Below are positions 3,390 through 60,109 of a DNA stretch of 64,000 nucleotides, piece after piece. The notes below the pieces were generated by a model that was not told where the DNA came from, searched no databases, and saw nothing but the letters and a program-made list of their open reading frames with translations. A program made the translations under genes and the position numbers. Origin of the DNA: Botryllus schlosseri (lineage: Eukaryota); NCBI GenBank assembly GCA_051294905.1, contig CM119379.1, forward strand, positions 13,330,001-13,394,000. The letters run 5' to 3'. Every line of letters begins with the position of its first letter. The first letter of the stretch is position 1.

Positions 3390-4228
3390 CAGGGGTGGGC
3401 AAACTTTTGAGCTCGCGGGCCGCATTCAACATCTGAATCCATTCGCGGGCCGCACTATATCAAATTGATATCATAAACCAAAACGCAATATTGCTAGTAT
3501 TTGATTATATAGCGAGGACATGGAGATAATGTTAATGTATATGCTTATTTGAAACAAACCAAACATTGCTATGATGACATCGTACACGCGCCAGAAACAA
3601 TAGTGAGATTTTATAGGCTGGTCGACCTCAATAACCAATTTCTCAAAACTATAGAGATGAAAGTCTGTTGTCCCGATTCTTAGAACAGGGTTGAAATTTA
3701 AATCTGTGAGCAGTGATCTGTTCAAAGATTTATTAATTCCGCTTTGGCTCAGTTCCAGGACACACAATGCTGACAGCATCATAACCATGTTAGCTGCAAC
3801 ATGCATATCACAAAACGTAACCAGGATGCTATAGCAAACCTAACGGATAGTTTGGTGGCATGGGAGGTTACGACTATTGATGAGAGATTTTGAAATATGA
3901 AATTCATACTAAATACAGAGCAATAATTATGAATTGGAAGTAAATCGCGCGAAGCGCGAAAAAAATTTCAGTTGAGCTCAGCTTCGCGATCCCCTTCTGA
4001 TGCTTTCATGACCCCCAGGGGCACGCGTCACCCAGGTTGAGACCCACTGCCTTAGAATTATCATGGTGAAATATACTAAGAAGAAGTTTAATCAAGTCCC
4101 TGCATTAATTCGATTTTTAGTACTCATTTTATCAATATTTTTATTAAATTTATTTAGACTCTCGCGGGCCGCACAGAACGGTGTTGCGGGCCGCATGCGG
4201 CCCGCGGGCCGTAGTTTGCCCACCCCTG
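3390..4228 (+). mobile_element. Non-autonomous hAT (Charlie-type) MITE
   Basis: TIR CAGGGGTGGGCAAACT...AGTTTGCCCACCCCTG, perfect 8-bp TSD CGGTATAG, subterminal GCGGGCCGC repeats. Confidence 0.9.
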
Positions 4229-47500: not shown

Positions 47501-47851
47501 ACTAAAATCTCGTGTGGTGTCGGGGCTCTCTATCGCTTTAAAAATTTAATTCTCCATCAAACTATTAGATCAGTCTACTATGCCTTAATTCACTGCTATC
47601 TCATTTATGGGATCCTAGTTTGGGGACCTGCTGCAAAAAACATCTGCAAAAATTGCAAGTCTTGCAAAACCGAGCCATACGAATTCTCTGTCGGAAACTG
47701 TGGTGTTATGATATGCCTGATTGATCATGCGATGGGTTTCCGGATTGTTTTGATGACAGACAAGCATGTGGTCTGGGGGAATACACTTCGAGTCCGACTT
47801 GTAAAAGTATCTGTCTAAGTAGACAGCTAGAAGCTTATTGATAATACTACA

Positions 47852-47886
47852 TGGTGGCAGCGGTGGGATTCGAACCCACGCCATCG
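47852..47886 (-). other. 35-nt DNA copy of the 3' end of mature tRNA-Leu (not a tRNA gene)
   Basis: Minus strand CGATGGCGTGGGTTCGAATCCCACCGCTGCCA-CCA comprises variable-arm end, T-arm, acceptor strand and post-transcriptional CCA. No 5' half is present. Confidence 0.9.
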
Positions 47887-47984
47887 TATCTGTCTAAGTA
47901 TCTGTCTAAGTAGACAGCTAGAAGCTTATTGATAATACTACATGGTGGAAGCGGATAACTTCGAACTAGCCTAATAACTAGATT

Positions 47985-50900
47985 ATGGCGGCCGTTGTAT
48001 TAGGTCCGGGGGATCTCACAATAATAGGCGCCGTGAATGAGGCAGAAGCCTGGCTGGAATGGAAAAAGAAATTCCTGATCTTTATCGATGCAGCAGGTCA
48101 TGCTGAATCACCTGGGCGCCAGAAAGTTGGATTATTACTGCAATTCATAGGAAAAGAAGGAAAGGAAATATACGAGGATTTCGTGTTTGCTGAAGCAGTC
48201 GCAGAATCAGACGGTGTGGAAGCAGTTGCAGCAGAAGACAAAACTGACCTTGATACCGTCTTGAAGAAGTTTGATGAACGTTTCAAGTTTCGGGATGGCA
48301 GGTTTGAAGCACACCTTCAATTCTTCCATTTCTTACAACGCAAAGAGGGTGAATCATTTGCATCTTGGGTACATGCAGTCAGAAAGGCTGCACGAAAATG
48401 CCAATTTCCTCCAGCAGTGTACGACGCAACCGTTCGGGCTAAACTTATTGTCGGGTGCGTAGATGATTCTGAGATGTTGTACAAGCTATCGGAAATCGAC
48501 TTTGACAAGCTAACGTCTCAGAAGATTATCGACGTTGTGACTACACAGGAGACGAGACGGAGCTATGCTGATCGGAGATCTGCACCGACAGCAATAGAAG
48601 CGGTGGCCAACAAAGCGAGACCTCAAACTTTTAAGAAGCCTGCAGTTGAAAGTGTGCCTATAATAAACTGCACATTTTGCGGTCGACGGCACAAAAGAGG
48701 CATAGGGTTCTGTCCAGCAGCCTCAGTAAAATGCTACAGATGTGGTAGAACGGGCCATTATAAGGAAAGGTGCAGAAGTAGAAATGTACGCGTGCTGGAT
48801 AGCGAAACGATTGAGGAAGAACCAAGCGCTGAGTGTTATGACGAGGAAGAACTTCCAGACGCAATGTGTGGAAGTGTGGGCGAAACCCAGGAAGCAGAAG
48901 CATCGGTAGGTTCAGCACAGGCTACTAAGACTATCCAGTGGACTATCATGTTGAGAGTCGTTAACAACACTCTGAAATGGATTGTTGACTCTGGAGCAGA
49001 AGTGTCTGTCATGCCGCGGCGATTGTACAAGAGACAATATGGGCCTATACAGAAATCTGATAGACGGCTCATTGGAGTTAATCGACAACCTCTCAATACT
49101 GTTGGTTTTGTACGGATGAAACTCAGCTCCGATTTCAAGGCGTTAACAGAGAAAGTCTACATTGTATCGGATGCGGATAAGCTACTCCTTGGCGCTCCTG
49201 CTATACTGGAACTTGGACTTCTTCAAGAGTGCGAGGATGTTCAAGTATCCATAAGGGCAGTCAAACTTACCCCTGAGAGTCGTTTGCGGAGCAAAGACGA
49301 CGTCAAGAAAGCATACCCAGAGCTATTCAAAGGCATTGGCAAACTGGGAGAGCCGTTTACTATTCACATGAAAGACGGCGTTGAGCCCTTCTGTTTGAAT
49401 TTGCCACGTCGTGTGCCAATCCCATTGCGCCAGAAACTCAAAGAGGAGATAGATAAGCTTGAAGAGCTCGGTATCATAGAAGAAGTGACGGGACCTACAG
49501 ATTGGTGTGCTCCAATCGTAGTCGTAGCCAAACCAGACGGAAAGGTGCGACTGTGTGTAGACCTAACCAAGCTCAATAATGGGGTAAAAAGGGAGCTGTA
49601 CCCTATGCCTACAGTCGAAAGCACTTTGGGGCAACTGTCAAAGGGGACGGTCTTCACTAAGCTGGACGCAAACTCTGGATTTTATCAAATTGAGCTCGCC
49701 CCTGAAAGTCGGAAGTTGACAACGTTTATCACACCGTTTGGGAGATATCAATTTCGTCGCTTACCATTTGGCATCTCGAGCGCACCGGAAGCGTTCCAAA
49801 AACGTATCAGTGAAATCCTGCAAGGAATCCCAAACGTGATTTGCCATATGGATGACATCCTAGTAGTTGGCACTCAAACTACGCACGATGAGACGCTGAA
49901 GGCTGTATTGGACCGTCTAAAATGCTCTGGCATGACTCTAAATGAGAAGAAATGCATCGTTGCTGCAACTGAACTTGAATATCTCGGTCAGGTCATCGGC
50001 CAAGATGGTATCAGCAAAGATCCAAAGAAGGTGCAGGCTATTGTGAATTATGCTGCTCCTACTGATAAGACTGAACTTCGCAGGTTCTTGGGAATGGCAA
50101 ACCAGCTCATGAAGTTTAGCTCCAACCTAGCGGAACTGACCAAGCCGTTACGAGAATTGTTGGCGAAGAAGGTTGAGTGGTACTGGGGCCCGTCACAAGA
50201 GGAATCGTTTGCAAGAGTGAAACGCGATCTGTCTTCCGATGTTACATTAGCTATGTATTGCCCAGACAGGGAAACTGTGCTCTCAGCTGACTCCAGCAGT
50301 TACGGCCTTGGTGCCGTTCTGATGCAAAGACAAGATGACAATAACCTTCGCCCGGTCGCATATGCCAGCAGATCAATGAGCGACACTGAACAACGGTACG
50401 CCCAGATAGAAAAAGAGGCCTTGGCAATCACTTGGGCAATGGAGCACTGGAGAGAACTCTTACTGGGTATTGAAGATCTGAAAGTTGAAACTGACCACAA
50501 GCCACTAGTGCCTCTGCTCTCAACGAAATCGCTTGACGAATTACCTGTCAGAATTCAAAGATTCAAAATTAGGCTGATGTCCTATAACTTTGCAATTTTC
50601 CACACGCCAGGAAAGTCGATGTACACAGCAGACGCGCTATCACGATGCCCTTTGCCGACAACGGATGGCATCGAAGACACCGATCTTCACAAGGAAGCGG
50701 AAGCATGTGTGCGTGCTCTGGTCAGCGGGCTGTCTGCTACTGACCGACGCCTTGAAGAAATAAAGAATGCTCTTAAAGAAGACAAGACACTGTCGACTGT
50801 TATGACATATGTTGTTGGAGGATGGCCAAAGAACAAAGAAACTTTAAATGGACCGGTGCGTATCTTCTGGAATCTCAGAGACGTGTTAACAGTACATGAC

Positions 50901-52031
50901 AATCTCTTGCTAAAAAGCAACAGACTCGTCATACCACCGCCGTTGCGCGAAGATGTTCTGAAGCACCTTCACCAATCACACCTTGGAGTAACCAAGACCA
51001 GACAACTTGCAGCACAAGCTTGCTGGTGGCCGGGTTATTCAAAAGACATTGAACATGCAGTACTCAACTGCAACCGCTGTGAAAAGCATCGACGAGATCG
51101 AACTGAACCGATGATGGGGACCGAATTTCCGACACGCCCATGGGCTAGAATTGCTGCTGATTTTTTCCAACTGGAGGACAAGTACTACCTTTTGATCATG
51201 GATTACTACTCCAGAGACATAGAACTGTTCTCAGTAAAGAAAACGATCTCGTCACGGGACACAATTTCTCACTTCAAGAATGTGTTCTCTCATCATGGCA
51301 TCTGTGATGTCTTGCTTACGGACAATGCTTCGGTCTTCGTTTCCTCTGAATTTTCTCAGTTCTCCAGAGCCTGGAATTTTCAGCACCTCACCTCTTCTCC
51401 AAAATATAGCCAGGGCAATGGCTTCATCGAGAGAGGAGTACAAACTATAAAGGCCCTGCTCAAGAAAACAGATGATGTCTATCTGACGCTACTGAACTAT
51501 AGGAACACGCCCTTGCACTCCGGCTTATCACCCGCCCAATTGAGCATGGGACGCAGATTGAAGACAAAGGTGATTTGTCATCCTGACCAGCTACGGCCAC
51601 AGACTGTTGATGTCGAAGATCTTCGAAAAAGGGAGACGGAGTATAGACAGAAAATGGCTGCGAGTTACAATAAAAGACATCGTGTGGTTGAGAATGATAG
51701 ATTCGGAATTGGAGACCATGTATACATTCCTGATTGCGAAAGGATGGGTATCATCAAGGAAATGCATGAAAATCCTAGAGCGATCATCGTTGAGACGAAC
51801 AATGGACTAATGAGGCGTAACCGAAAACACTTACGGAAGTACAACCCTCCGGAGGAACCCAAACCATCTGTTCCGCATCAGAATAAACCGGTTGAATATT
51901 GTCTTGTAGCGTCGAAGAAACCAGGACACCGTCAAGAAGCCAACGGTTCATCTGAACCTACCGGAGAGAATCCCGCGAGACGATCCTCGAGAATTAGAAA
52001 TCCGCCACAACGATTTATTGAGCAATATTGA
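47985..52031 (+). CDS. Gypsy single-ORF Gag-Pol polyprotein (1348 aa), uninterrupted
   Basis: Gag with two Cys/His knuckles (second CYRCGRTGHYKERC), protease VDSGAEVS, RT (LDANSGFYQI, LPFGISSAPE, HMDD), RNase H (ADSSSYGLGAVL, EKEALAI, TDHKPL), integrase HHCC plus DDE (ADFF, TDNAS, GFIERGVQT) and an SH3-like C-terminus. Confidence 0.98.
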   Translation: MAAVVLGPGDLTIIGAVNEAEAWLEWKKKFLIFIDAAGHAESPGRQKVGLLLQFIGKEGKEIYEDFVFAEAVAESDGVEAVAAEDKTDLDTVLKKFDERFKFRDGRFEAHLQFFHFLQRKEGESFASWVHAVRKAARKCQFPPAVYDATVRAKLIVGCVDDSEMLYKLSEIDFDKLTSQKIIDVVTTQETRRSYADRRSAPTAIEAVANKARPQTFKKPAVESVPIINCTFCGRRHKRGIGFCPAASVKCYRCGRTGHYKERCRSRNVRVLDSETIEEEPSAECYDEEELPDAMCGSVGETQEAEASVGSAQATKTIQWTIMLRVVNNTLKWIVDSGAEVSVMPRRLYKRQYGPIQKSDRRLIGVNRQPLNTVGFVRMKLSSDFKALTEKVYIVSDADKLLLGAPAILELGLLQECEDVQVSIRAVKLTPESRLRSKDDVKKAYPELFKGIGKLGEPFTIHMKDGVEPFCLNLPRRVPIPLRQKLKEEIDKLEELGIIEEVTGPTDWCAPIVVVAKPDGKVRLCVDLTKLNNGVKRELYPMPTVESTLGQLSKGTVFTKLDANSGFYQIELAPESRKLTTFITPFGRYQFRRLPFGISSAPEAFQKRISEILQGIPNVICHMDDILVVGTQTTHDETLKAVLDRLKCSGMTLNEKKCIVAATELEYLGQVIGQDGISKDPKKVQAIVNYAAPTDKTELRRFLGMANQLMKFSSNLAELTKPLRELLAKKVEWYWGPSQEESFARVKRDLSSDVTLAMYCPDRETVLSADSSSYGLGAVLMQRQDDNNLRPVAYASRSMSDTEQRYAQIEKEALAITWAMEHWRELLLGIEDLKVETDHKPLVPLLSTKSLDELPVRIQRFKIRLMSYNFAIFHTPGKSMYTADALSRCPLPTTDGIEDTDLHKEAEACVRALVSGLSATDRRLEEIKNALKEDKTLSTVMTYVVGGWPKNKETLNGPVRIFWNLRDVLTVHDNLLLKSNRLVIPPPLREDVLKHLHQSHLGVTKTRQLAAQACWWPGYSKDIEHAVLNCNRCEKHRRDRTEPMMGTEFPTRPWARIAADFFQLEDKYYLLIMDYYSRDIELFSVKKTISSRDTISHFKNVFSHHGICDVLLTDNASVFVSSEFSQFSRAWNFQHLTSSPKYSQGNGFIERGVQTIKALLKKTDDVYLTLLNYRNTPLHSGLSPAQLSMGRRLKTKVICHPDQLRPQTVDVEDLRKRETEYRQKMAASYNKRHRVVENDRFGIGDHVYIPDCERMGIIKEMHENPRAIIVETNNGLMRRNRKHLRKYNPPEEPKPSVPHQNKPVEYCLVASKKPGHRQEANGSSEPTGENPARRSSRIRNPPQRFIEQY

Positions 52032-53843
52032 TCACACACAGGTTTCAAGATCAGGGGCAGAATAATCCCCTAACCTGTTGTACACCTTGGGAGTAGTCTA
52101 CCTCCCTGGTGACTCTGTCTGTTAAGTGCAAATGTCCTGCTCTTGCTAACCTTGCAGGGGTAGTGTCATCTTGTATATATTGTTATCGCTGCTGTATTGT
52201 GACTTGTATATAATGTAAGTAGTGTTGATGTCTCTCCCCCTAAAAAAGGGAGATGTGGTGTTATGATATGCCTGATTGATCATGCGATGGGTTTCCGGAT
52301 TGTTTTGATGACAGACAAGCATGTGGTCTGGGGGAATACACTTCGAGTCCGACTTGTAAAAGTATCTGTCTAAGTAGACAGCTAGAAGCTTATTGATAAT
52401 ACTACAGAAACCTAGATATGAAAATTGTAATAGCATGTATCGAAGCGTTGGAATATTGAAGGTGAAAGACATTTTCAAATTTGAGGTAATGAAATTTATG
52501 CATAGCTATCATCAGGATGAACTGCCACTATATTTTGATAATCTGTTCAAGATACCTTCAGATACCCGGCCACCAACGTCATACCACATTTTCTTTTAAC
52601 TTGTCTCTGTCTGTGCAACACCACCAGTCCAGTCAGTGCAAAATTCGATCAGTTTTATTGGTGTCAATGTATGGAATAAGCTGCCACCTCATCTCCGCAA
52701 TTTGGACTCTTGTGCTTTTGTATTGCTTTCACAACTACAGTCATTGCAGTAAAGAATTTATTAACTCGAATACTTTTCGTGTCCCCCTTATCGAGAGTTA
52801 ATTAACGGCACAATAACAAGCATGCAGAAAGAGATTCAAACGAAAACCAAATTGGTAAAGTATGACGTAATAATACAATAATAAAAATTTACGCTAGGCA
52901 AAGTCAGCTTGTGCTTTTAAAAAGCAATGTTTTCATTCTCTTATCTCTAATTACCGATAAATTGTATTTGCATTGTATTTCGAATTGGTCCATGATACTG
53001 TGTCTTATTTTCCTTGTCGTTCGTTAATTAATTTTATATTTTGTTTATTAGTTATCAACTGTGAAAATTGCTCCTGTCCTGGGTAGCTCGGCTCTGAAGA
53101 CTTTGTTATATCTAGCCTCCCGCGTTTACCTTGCAGGTCGCATTTCACTGATACATTTTGGTAGTGTAATGTTGATATGTAATGTATGCGAATAAATATT
53201 CTCTCTCTCTCTTTCCATTTTTTTTCTGGCTATGCTCTTGGGACGGGCCAATTGTTATTGACGACATTGTTGAATCATACTGTTATTTTATGACCCCCGG
53301 TGAAAATTGCCACTCAAAATTTATTGGTATTGCCAACACGTAAGACTAACTAAATGAAAAAGTCATTTCACGAGACACATACTCCAATTAGTATTTATTC
53401 TTGGGGAGCAATATATTTTCCTCTGCTGGTTCCCCGTGGGACTCAATTTTAAACGGCATGATCATACCGTACCAGTTATTTCGGCGACTGATCATGGATA
53501 TCGAAAGTTTTTGCCAAGATGCCAAGGTAATCTTCGTCCCAGGGTTTTGTCGCGATTCTTATGTATCAATAGCTGGTTGCATTTTGAAATCACGTTGCGA
53601 CTGATCTGATACCCTGTTTGCCGGGTTCGCTGTCAATAGCACGGATCCGGTTGATTGGCGTTCTTGTAGTTGCCAGTCCCCGGTCCCCCTACTTATAGGC
53701 CTTGAACAAGCTATTCAGGTACAATTCATAATTAAGCGATCATATTGTTAATTTATTCGCTAAAAGCTTTTCGTCAGAGACAAAATATTTCCCACATTTC
53801 GAATGTGTTTCGTCCTATTATACTGACGTCCGCTACTGCGATG

Positions 53844-55955: not shown

Positions 55956-56161
55956 CAGAGATGAGCATGGATTAGGAATAGGTTTTGAAAAAACAGGATT
56001 TGTGAAATTTTGTCGGATTTGGATTGGATTTGGATTATACATTTTTTTCAGAACGGATTAGGATTTGGATTGGGTTTATCTATTTTTTGGGAGATTGAAA
56101 TGTCGGGTGGCGAATGGCGACAAACTTTATTCAAATCAGTTATCAATGTGCTTATGGTTAC

Positions 56162-56964
56162 TAGGGCTGGGCACAATGATTCGAGTACTCGAATCTGAAT
56201 CGAGTATTAATTTTAATGATTCGAGTCGAGTAGTAAAAGACGATTTTTTCGAGTACTGAAATTATAGGCTCCTCACCACTGAAAGTTGATTTATCAACGA
56301 GGAGTTTATCAACGATCAACGAGTTTATGCTAATTTCACTGTTGAAGCCTTGAAACTTTGATTGGCCGTATCGTAGCATACGAAACATGAAGTACAAAGC
56401 TACGAACGTTACTGGAAATAGCACATTTCCGAAGTCATGATCATCCCACAATATTGTCACCAAGTGCAATGAAATCGGTATGGTCGAAAAAAATAACAAA
56501 ATATCCTTAATATGGTGGATAACAGGCATTATATTCTTTGTGGTCGCTGAAAAGGTACATATTTGAACTTTGACAAATAATATTATGCTATGACGTCATA
56601 ATGAGTGATACTCGATTACCAGACGTGGTCAGTAACGAAGTACTTCTACTTTTTGAAGTACTTGAAGTAGATTTTTCCTACTCACACTACTTTTTAAGTA
56701 GTTATGATTTCAGACTACTTCTACTTCTACTTGACAGTTTTCAGTTTTGTAGGCAAAAATATGCGTAGAATACCTACTTACTTACTTACTTGTGAACCAC
56801 CACTCCTACTTCTACTTGAGTAGAAATTCCACCGTTACTTCTACTTCTACTTGATTAACGACGGTGACTACTTTGACCACTTCTGTCGATTACTCGACTC
56901 GACTCGAAGCATTATACGTGATTCAGAATCGAATCACTCAGGTACTCGATTTTGCCCAGCCCTA
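56162..56964 (+). mobile_element. hAT MITE with TAGGGCTGGG TIRs and TCGAGTA/TACTCGA repeats
   Basis: TAGGGCTGGGCA...TGCCCAGCCCTA; colinear with 59198-60109 and with an inverted partial copy at ~57230-57748; contains a nested CTACTT-rich MITE (~56622-56885). Confidence 0.8.
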
Positions 56965-58760: not shown

Positions 58761-59197
58761 TTCGTTTTTGGGTCTCAATTAGCGGAGTAGTAATTCGTCC
58801 ATCAAAATCGAGTACCTAACAATGACGCGGTAAACTGGCATCTAGCCTGCGCGTGAGTGTGTACGCGTGCATTCACCGATTCGAGGCTCGGATCCCCCGT
58901 CATTTTCCGAGGCTGGATTTCCGAGGCTGTGATCCCCTTTGGTATAATGGTTTGGGTAAATCTAATCTTATGTACACTGTACAGAAAAACCAGGGAATTC
59001 GAGAAATCCGTGGGAGAAGCATTTGGTGTACTCTGCGACGAGCTTCGAAACCATAACGAAAAGCAGCCAGCAAATTATACGAACTCAATTTCTCTTGCTT
59101 GCTGAGTAGCTGTCGCTCTTTGGAGGGTAGCCAATGAAGCCAATCGTTTATTAAATTCAGGTAAACGATTTTACTACAAATAATTGCTGGTGCCTAG

Positions 59198-60109
59198 TGG
59201 GGCTAGCCACAATGATTCGAGTACTCGAATCTGAATCGAGTAATAACTTTAATGATTCGAGTCGAGTAGTAAAATACTATTTTTCGAGTACTGTAATTAT
59301 ACTGAAAGTTGATTTGCTAACGAGAATTATACCGTAGTTTTGATACTATTTTCCACTGAGTAAGCCTTGAAACCTTGATTGGCCGTGTCGCAACATACGA
59401 GATATAGCACAAAGCTACGAACGTTGCTGGAAATAACACATTACCGAAGTCAGGACCATCTCATGGCCATAACAGTCAAGCAGTGCAATGAAAATGGTAT
59501 GGTCGAAAAAAACAAAGTATCTTTAATGTGACGGACAATAGGCGTTATGTTTTTTATGGTGGCATACCAGTATGGAATCGGTGTCCAAGGCACGCAGGAT
59601 CACGCCGACTTGGTCGCCAGTTGCACGCGGTCACGCCGTCACGGGTCGTTGATTTCATTAAAAAAAAAAAAATCGAAAAAAAATCAAATGTTCTCAGCCA
59701 CCCCAAATGCTATATTACAGTTATTATGTGGTATATAATATTTTGACCTAATCATAAAGCCAGGATCTGTTGATTACTGTCTGTTGGTAAAGTACTTGCA
59801 CCTTACCAGTTGCTAACCTTTAGCATCTGATCTCCTGTCACTGGCGTAACACAGTCATTTGAAGTCAGTAAACTTGCTTGTCACGCCGCAAAGTTGACTC
59901 TGTAACGCGATAAAAGCTTCTATCACGCAGGATTTATTTCAAAAAAAGGACGGACATTCCAATCAAAAAGGTAGCCTACACACTTAAATTTTGGCATAGT
60001 ACATTGTGTTGTGATGTCATCATGATGATACTCGACTCGAATCAAAGTGTAATAACTAATAAGTGATTCAGAATCGAATCACTCAGGCACTCGATTTTGT
60101 CCAACCCTA
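59198..60109 (+). mobile_element. hAT deletion derivative, TAGGGCTGG family, with possible dimerisation-domain remnant
   Basis: Homologous to 56162-56964; TSD gtgcctag/gtgcatcg. Region 59800-59945 gives frameshifted YQLL.PLASDLLS...RRIYFK, resembling a hAT C-terminus. Confidence 0.7.

Follow-up and report, generated by a model that had tools for sequence, protein, structure and literature searches.

A DNA copy of the primer tRNA-Leu preserved in a young Gypsy-type retrotransposon of Botryllus schlosseri

A young, intact Gypsy-type retrotransposon of Botryllus schlosseri carries, between its 5' LTR and its normal primer binding site (PBS), a 35-nt DNA copy of the 3' end of the tRNA-Leu that primed it, followed by a re-copied LTR tail. 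The arrangement is best read as a preserved error of reverse transcription, and at least 36 independent errors of the same kind lie elsewhere in this genome. The element was found in a stretch of 64,000 nucleotides (hereafter the window; GCA_051294905.1, contig CM119379.1, positions 13,330,001 to 13,394,000, forward strand), and coordinates without a prefix refer to this window; those with a prefix (C2, C4 and so on) refer to the contigs of the same 495-Mb assembly. The parts of the locus are:

47694..47698 (+), left copy of the 5-bp target-site duplication (GAAAC)
47699..47851 (+), 5' LTR, 153 nt, TG...CA
47852..47886 (+), 35-nt DNA copy (complement) of the 3' end of mature tRNA-Leu: CCA, discriminator A, the acceptor 3' strand, the whole T arm and 7 nt of the variable arm; 47870 is the T opposite A58
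47887..47898 (+), 12-nt duplicate of LTR positions 47808-47819 (inferred first landing in U5, then a 12-nt slip-back at an AAG/AAGTA microhomology)
47899..47942 (+), re-copied last 44 nt of the LTR (U5 tail), with the private T variant of this copy
47943..47954 (+), parental 12-nt PBS, matching tRNA-Leu at 11 of 12 positions, with A at 47949 against C in the tRNA copy
47960..47966 (+), TTCGAAC in the ordinary leader, in register with the T-loop complement (nt 18-24 of a tRNA copy)
47985..52031 (+), open putative gag-pol ORF, 1348 aa (RT, RNase H, integrase)
52242..52253 (+), polypurine tract, 12 purines abutting the 3' LTR
52254..52406 (+), 3' LTR
52407..52411 (+), right copy of the target-site duplication (GAAAC)

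The two LTRs are 100% identical, and the domain order of the ORF is that of Ty3/Gypsy (Metaviridae) elements: RVT_1 at residues 515-670, RT_RNaseH at 734-867, and Integrase_H2C2 and rve at 983-1140. Residues 1-514, where gag and the aspartic protease would be sought, gave no Pfam hit at E ≤ 0.001, although the frame is open throughout. The nearest Atlas clusters are animal Gypsy-type polyproteins. The element is inserted in a reading frame that weakly resembles the end of a reverse transcriptase (RVT_1, E = 0.009), probably an older non-LTR element.

A sequence-only reading of this stretch had described the insert as an exact complement of the tRNA-Leu 3' end, a 12-nt stutter, the last 44 nt of the LTR and the normal PBS with a C>A mismatch, and this description is correct to the base in the assembled sequence. 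To ascertain that the match to tRNA-Leu extends beyond the first 18 nt, which had been set beforehand as a condition for the reading to stand, the genome was searched with the pattern of the copy and with ARAGORN. About 20 tRNA-Leu(AAG) and tRNA-Leu(TAG) genes were found whose 3' 32 nt match the encoded part of the copy exactly; the two isoacceptors are identical over this stretch and cannot be told apart from the window. Many of these genes lie in a dense cluster at C4:13520000-13595000 (13.52-13.59 Mb), together with some degenerate or truncated copies, for example at C4:13543731. The match is not due to chance: reversed-pattern controls gave no hits, the copy starts precisely after the last base of the LTR, and it carries the complement (TGG, 47852-47854) of the non-encoded CCA.

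Alignment with an ordinary copy of the family showed that the latter lacks exactly the 91 nt of the insert. In a DNA search with LTR, insert and leader, the full 362-nt arrangement was found only in the window, and the 12-nt duplication (a duplicated 31-mer) also occurs once in the assembly. Both LTRs and the third U5 tail share a T that is present in no other copy; the three tails thus come from one event, and neither progeny nor a parent of this copy is present in the assembly. In principle, the 91 nt could be a consensus or mis-join error of the assembly in a family with dozens of near-identical copies. Support at the level of reads is limited to the observation that sequencing runs from nine studies hold words of the family, with two runs from different studies holding more of the words of the stretch (0.64) than the others (0.46-0.52), which does not independently confirm the insert. 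However, an assembler cannot invent a CCA-tailed tRNA complement placed exactly at an LTR end, no other copy could supply the junctions at 47886/47887 or 47898/47899, and at least 36 analogous structures occur at other loci. We therefore consider an artefact very unlikely.

A rearrangement at the DNA level after integration, such as end joining or gene conversion between a read-through deletion copy and an ordinary copy, or nesting of an ordinary element into an LTR-tRNA remnant, is equally improbable. Read-through deletion copies that could act as donors do exist in the genome, but a single target-site duplication brackets the whole unit, the private base is shared by both LTRs and the third U5 tail, the 1 nt of homology at the tRNA-U5 junction excludes homologous exchange, and no other copy ends its tRNA segment at nt 35. 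An alternative that uses the same mechanism is that the error occurred one or more cycles earlier, the window copy being a faithful descendant of an unsampled or lost parent that already had the double PBS. An RNA carrying the insert would reproduce it, the private LTR variant has no parent in the assembly, and a high-copy repeat elsewhere (see below) shows that a tRNA-Leu copy can be inherited. This is unlikely, since no second copy of the insert or of its 12-nt duplication was found in 495 Mb and the identical LTRs indicate a very young copy, but the sequence itself does not tell the two timings apart.

The junctions between the LTR end of this family and the sequence that follows were then listed. 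Of 28 5' junctions, 18 are ordinary, with a 12-nt PBS followed by ATAAC and TTCGAAC, and 10 carry 35-59 nt of tRNA-Leu instead. Position 7 of the ordinary PBS is A in 7, C in 8 and T in 2 of the 18 copies (one copy has another change), whereas all 10 read-through copies have C; if these were drawn from the ordinary PBS pool, the probability would be about 2e-4. The read-through copies were thus templated by the tRNA and not by the PBS, as is also seen within the window, where the copy has C and the parental PBS of the same element has A. The C>A mismatch, at which the sequence-only reading inferred a failed second strand transfer, is a standing polymorphism of the family, and copies carrying it have transposed. 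Any 35-nt read-through gives a non-complementary 3' end whatever the PBS variant; both double-PBS copies (see below) carry the A variant, but 2 of 2 is not significant. The mismatch as the cause was rejected as unsupported.

In the other read-through copies of this family the tRNA is joined to element positions 1777, 2946, 3974, 4107, 4143, 4205 or 4220, or to other sequence, and the distal junctions all differ. The joins to element positions are internal deletions that keep the 3' part of the element. Two that were examined have their own 5-bp target duplications (TTAGG and GGAAG) and were thus integrated in that form. In the copy at C12:25779050 (minus strand), the tRNA segment ends in a short tandem expansion of TAATGAC, the last copied tRNA bases, before joining position 4107. 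One copy, at C9:8693394, has 47 nt of tRNA, the last 11 nt of the LTR, the PBS (A variant) and the full body, and represents a second and independent double-PBS product; it is older, with a broken ORF and a truncated 5' LTR. The LTRs of these copies are 92-98% identical to those of the window, so the events are spread over time.

Read-through is not confined to this family. The CCA-tailed pattern gave 128 hits in the genome with up to two mismatches and none for the reversed control. After removal of tRNA genes and one inherited lineage, we count at least 37 independent LTR-tRNA-Leu junctions behind at least six different LTR ends, with 30-59 nt of tRNA and different distal partners. Among LTRs ending in TACTACA, 36 of 38 copies with at least 15 nt of tRNA run on through the T loop, and only one stops near nt 16-17. 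The inherited lineage, the GCGATGGG group (family F, at least 60 copies), was first taken for an LTR lineage founded by a read-through. No LTR pair and no long ORF were found within 10 kb, which ruled this out; it is a non-autonomous repeat of about 1.9 kb, of unknown class (2513 candidates at first look), and shows inheritance of a tRNA copy but not a Gypsy lineage. It carries a 56-nt CCA-tailed copy of tRNA-Leu(IAG) with shared mutations (G>A at nt 12, C>A near position 36) and C opposite A34, as at C2:1823630-1824169.

Across these sister loci, the template was mature tRNA. CCA is present in all, and all seven AAG-derived events that reach position 34 show C where the gene would give T. No Leu-GAG gene with this body was found in the genome, so inosine-34, formed by A-to-I editing, was read as G. 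About 20 copies have A instead of G at nt 11 and match a Leu-AAG isodecoder with a compensated A7:U66 pair (gene at C8:1176990), although only one or two of about 30 genes carry that pair. The endpoints are not uniform: none goes beyond nt 59 (G26), 8 of 37 end at nt 46-47, just before G37 (P about 0.002), and five end at nt 42. G37 and G26 are the usual sites of m1G and m2,2G, both hard stops for reverse transcriptases; their assignment here rests on this general pattern rather than on data from this species. The 35 nt of the window are among the shortest read-throughs and end before the anticodon, so that the inosine evidence comes from the sister loci only.

The isodecoder also bears on the possibility that the primer had already been removed and that the plus strand, having reached the end of U5, jumped end-to-end onto an unlinked tRNA-Leu. 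Reverse transcriptases can jump between template ends, and the product would look the same. However, only tRNA-Leu, the cognate primer of these families, was seen at these junctions. In one of the other families (family B; 5' ends at C2:36568659 and C14:25260695) most copies come from the rare A7:U66 isodecoder, which matches the 13-nt PBS of that family, as judged from only two ordinary PBS copies recovered with a strict pattern. This points to the annealed primer, and a jump to a free tRNA is very unlikely.

The central interpretation of the sequence-only reading, that a primer tRNA copy extending 17 nt past the canonical 18-nt stop was followed by re-copying of U5 to give a double-PBS Gypsy element, is supported, and we hold it with high confidence. 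What the sequence demonstrates is the order of the segments (LTR, complement of the last 35 nt of CCA-tailed tRNA-Leu, 12 + 44 nt of the LTR tail, parental PBS and leader) and the integration of the whole as a single unit; the course of events, the methylation state of A58 and any function of TTCGAAC are inferred. In the standard model of retroviral reverse transcription, a DNA complement of a tRNA placed 3' of U5 on the plus strand can only arise when plus-strand synthesis copies the tRNA attached to the minus strand. [quoted passage not shown] Its 3' end could then no longer pair with the PBS copy on the minus strand. The polymerase would have switched template with 1 nt of homology (G, 47886/47887) to a point 56 nt before the end of U5, slipped back 12 nt once between two AAG(TA) motifs that lie 12 nt apart and flank a 6-bp inverted repeat (3 nt of homology, AAG), and re-copied the U5 tail, after which synthesis continued into the parental PBS and the body of the element to give an integration-competent DNA. 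The U5 template may have been either the minus-strand strong-stop segment itself or a minus strand that had run past the PBS into undegraded U5 RNA. The microhomology and the position of the small U5 inverted repeat are as the sequence-only reading had stated, but its hairpin as driver of the jump was not supported: the repeat folds as 6 bp with a 4-nt loop, no more stable than shuffled sequence (z about −1). Nor is the event a rare accident, given the 10 of 28 junctions in this family. The transcript of the locus would carry two primer sites, although no function is shown; the suggestions that the copy could found a lineage and that small RNAs could pair with tRNA-Leu fragments remain proposals, and the assembly holds no progeny.

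The base opposite A58 is T in 36 of 37 events. As m1A cannot form a Watson-Crick pair, bypass is normally mutagenic, and the clean T suggests that the primers involved lacked the blocking m1A58. These fossils are, however, a sample biased towards failures, since products that stopped normally leave no trace, and the general methylation level in this species does not follow from them. In HIV-1, m1A58 sets the 18-nt stop, minor products stop at psi55, m5U54 or position 37, TRMT6 mutation lets synthesis run beyond A58, and only products ending at A58, U54 or psi55 transfer productively (PMC13191261, citing Auxilien 1999, Burnett & McHenry 1997 and Fukuda 2021). The over-extension, the later stops at modified bases and the poor transfer of over-extended products are shared with the present series; here, the product is fixed in a germline genome, in a Ty3/Gypsy element primed by tRNA-Leu, was rescued by a non-homologous switch back into U5, and such read-through occurs in about a third of the copies of the family. 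Aberrant second strand transfer reportedly gives retroviral deletion and insertion mutants (Pulsinelli & Temin 1991, J Virol 65:4786), with deletions and with extra primer-derived sequence next to U5 as in the present series, and circle junctions are reported to contain tRNA sequence (Colicelli & Goff 1986); these were reportedly single-cycle vector experiments. Literature searches found the mechanism but neither genomic fossils of this kind nor a double-PBS product that retains a full-length element, which is not proof of novelty.

The ordinary leader of this family, in the window (47943-47966) and in all ordinary copies, has TTCGAAC exactly in register with the T-loop complement, which recalls the primer over-extension sequence of lentiviruses and spumaviruses (Muthuswami et al. 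2002, cited in PMC13191261). The match is 7 nt only, nt 13-17 differ at all five positions, and any function is inferred. The retention of a non-tRNA sequence at nt 13-17 in ordinary copies, together with the PBS mismatch variants, indicates that the tRNA copy is normally not inherited, as reported for Ty1 and Ty3 (Lauermann & Boeke 1994 and 1997, cited in PMC7472051 and PMC5371799), whereas it is inherited in the aberrant products described here.

The stop at A58 is a textbook step known mainly from HIV and MLV experiments, and these loci show what happens in nature, over evolutionary time, when it fails in an invertebrate-type Gypsy element: the element gains a piece of its primer and is either truncated or, as here, rescued with a duplicated U5 tail and two primer sites. 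The kind of event is known from retrovirology, and the recurrent, modification-marked series is the more informative result. It makes testable which modifications tRNA-Leu carries in this species and whether its A58 is methylated, and provides a simple sequence signature for dating and counting reverse-transcription failures in any genome. A more far-reaching reading, which is possible but tentative, is that the tRNA-Leu (IAG and UAG) molecules priming several Gypsy families in this animal commonly lack an effective block at A58. Read-through would then be a routine, perhaps the main, route to defective and rearranged copies, the genome would hold a germline-recorded map of tRNA-Leu modifications (inosine-34 read as G, a stop before G37, an absolute stop at G26), and the T-loop match in the leader would be an adaptation to over-extended strong-stop DNA.

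Some junctions have a more complex structure. At C12:10613905-10614016, two LTR ends of another family face each other, with their tRNA-Leu copies (46 and 42 nt) head to head and short repeats of the variable-arm sequence between them, which looks like a snap-back or palindromic product. At C5:11695109-11695908, two read-through junctions lie 765 nt apart, with the same endpoint (nt 46) and homologous downstream sequence but different LTR ends upstream. The end of a repeat present in the window as two diverged copies (56149-56964 and 59185-60109; 82-92% identical, about 3 kb apart) resembles one of the LTR ends seen next to a tRNA-Leu copy at this C5 locus.
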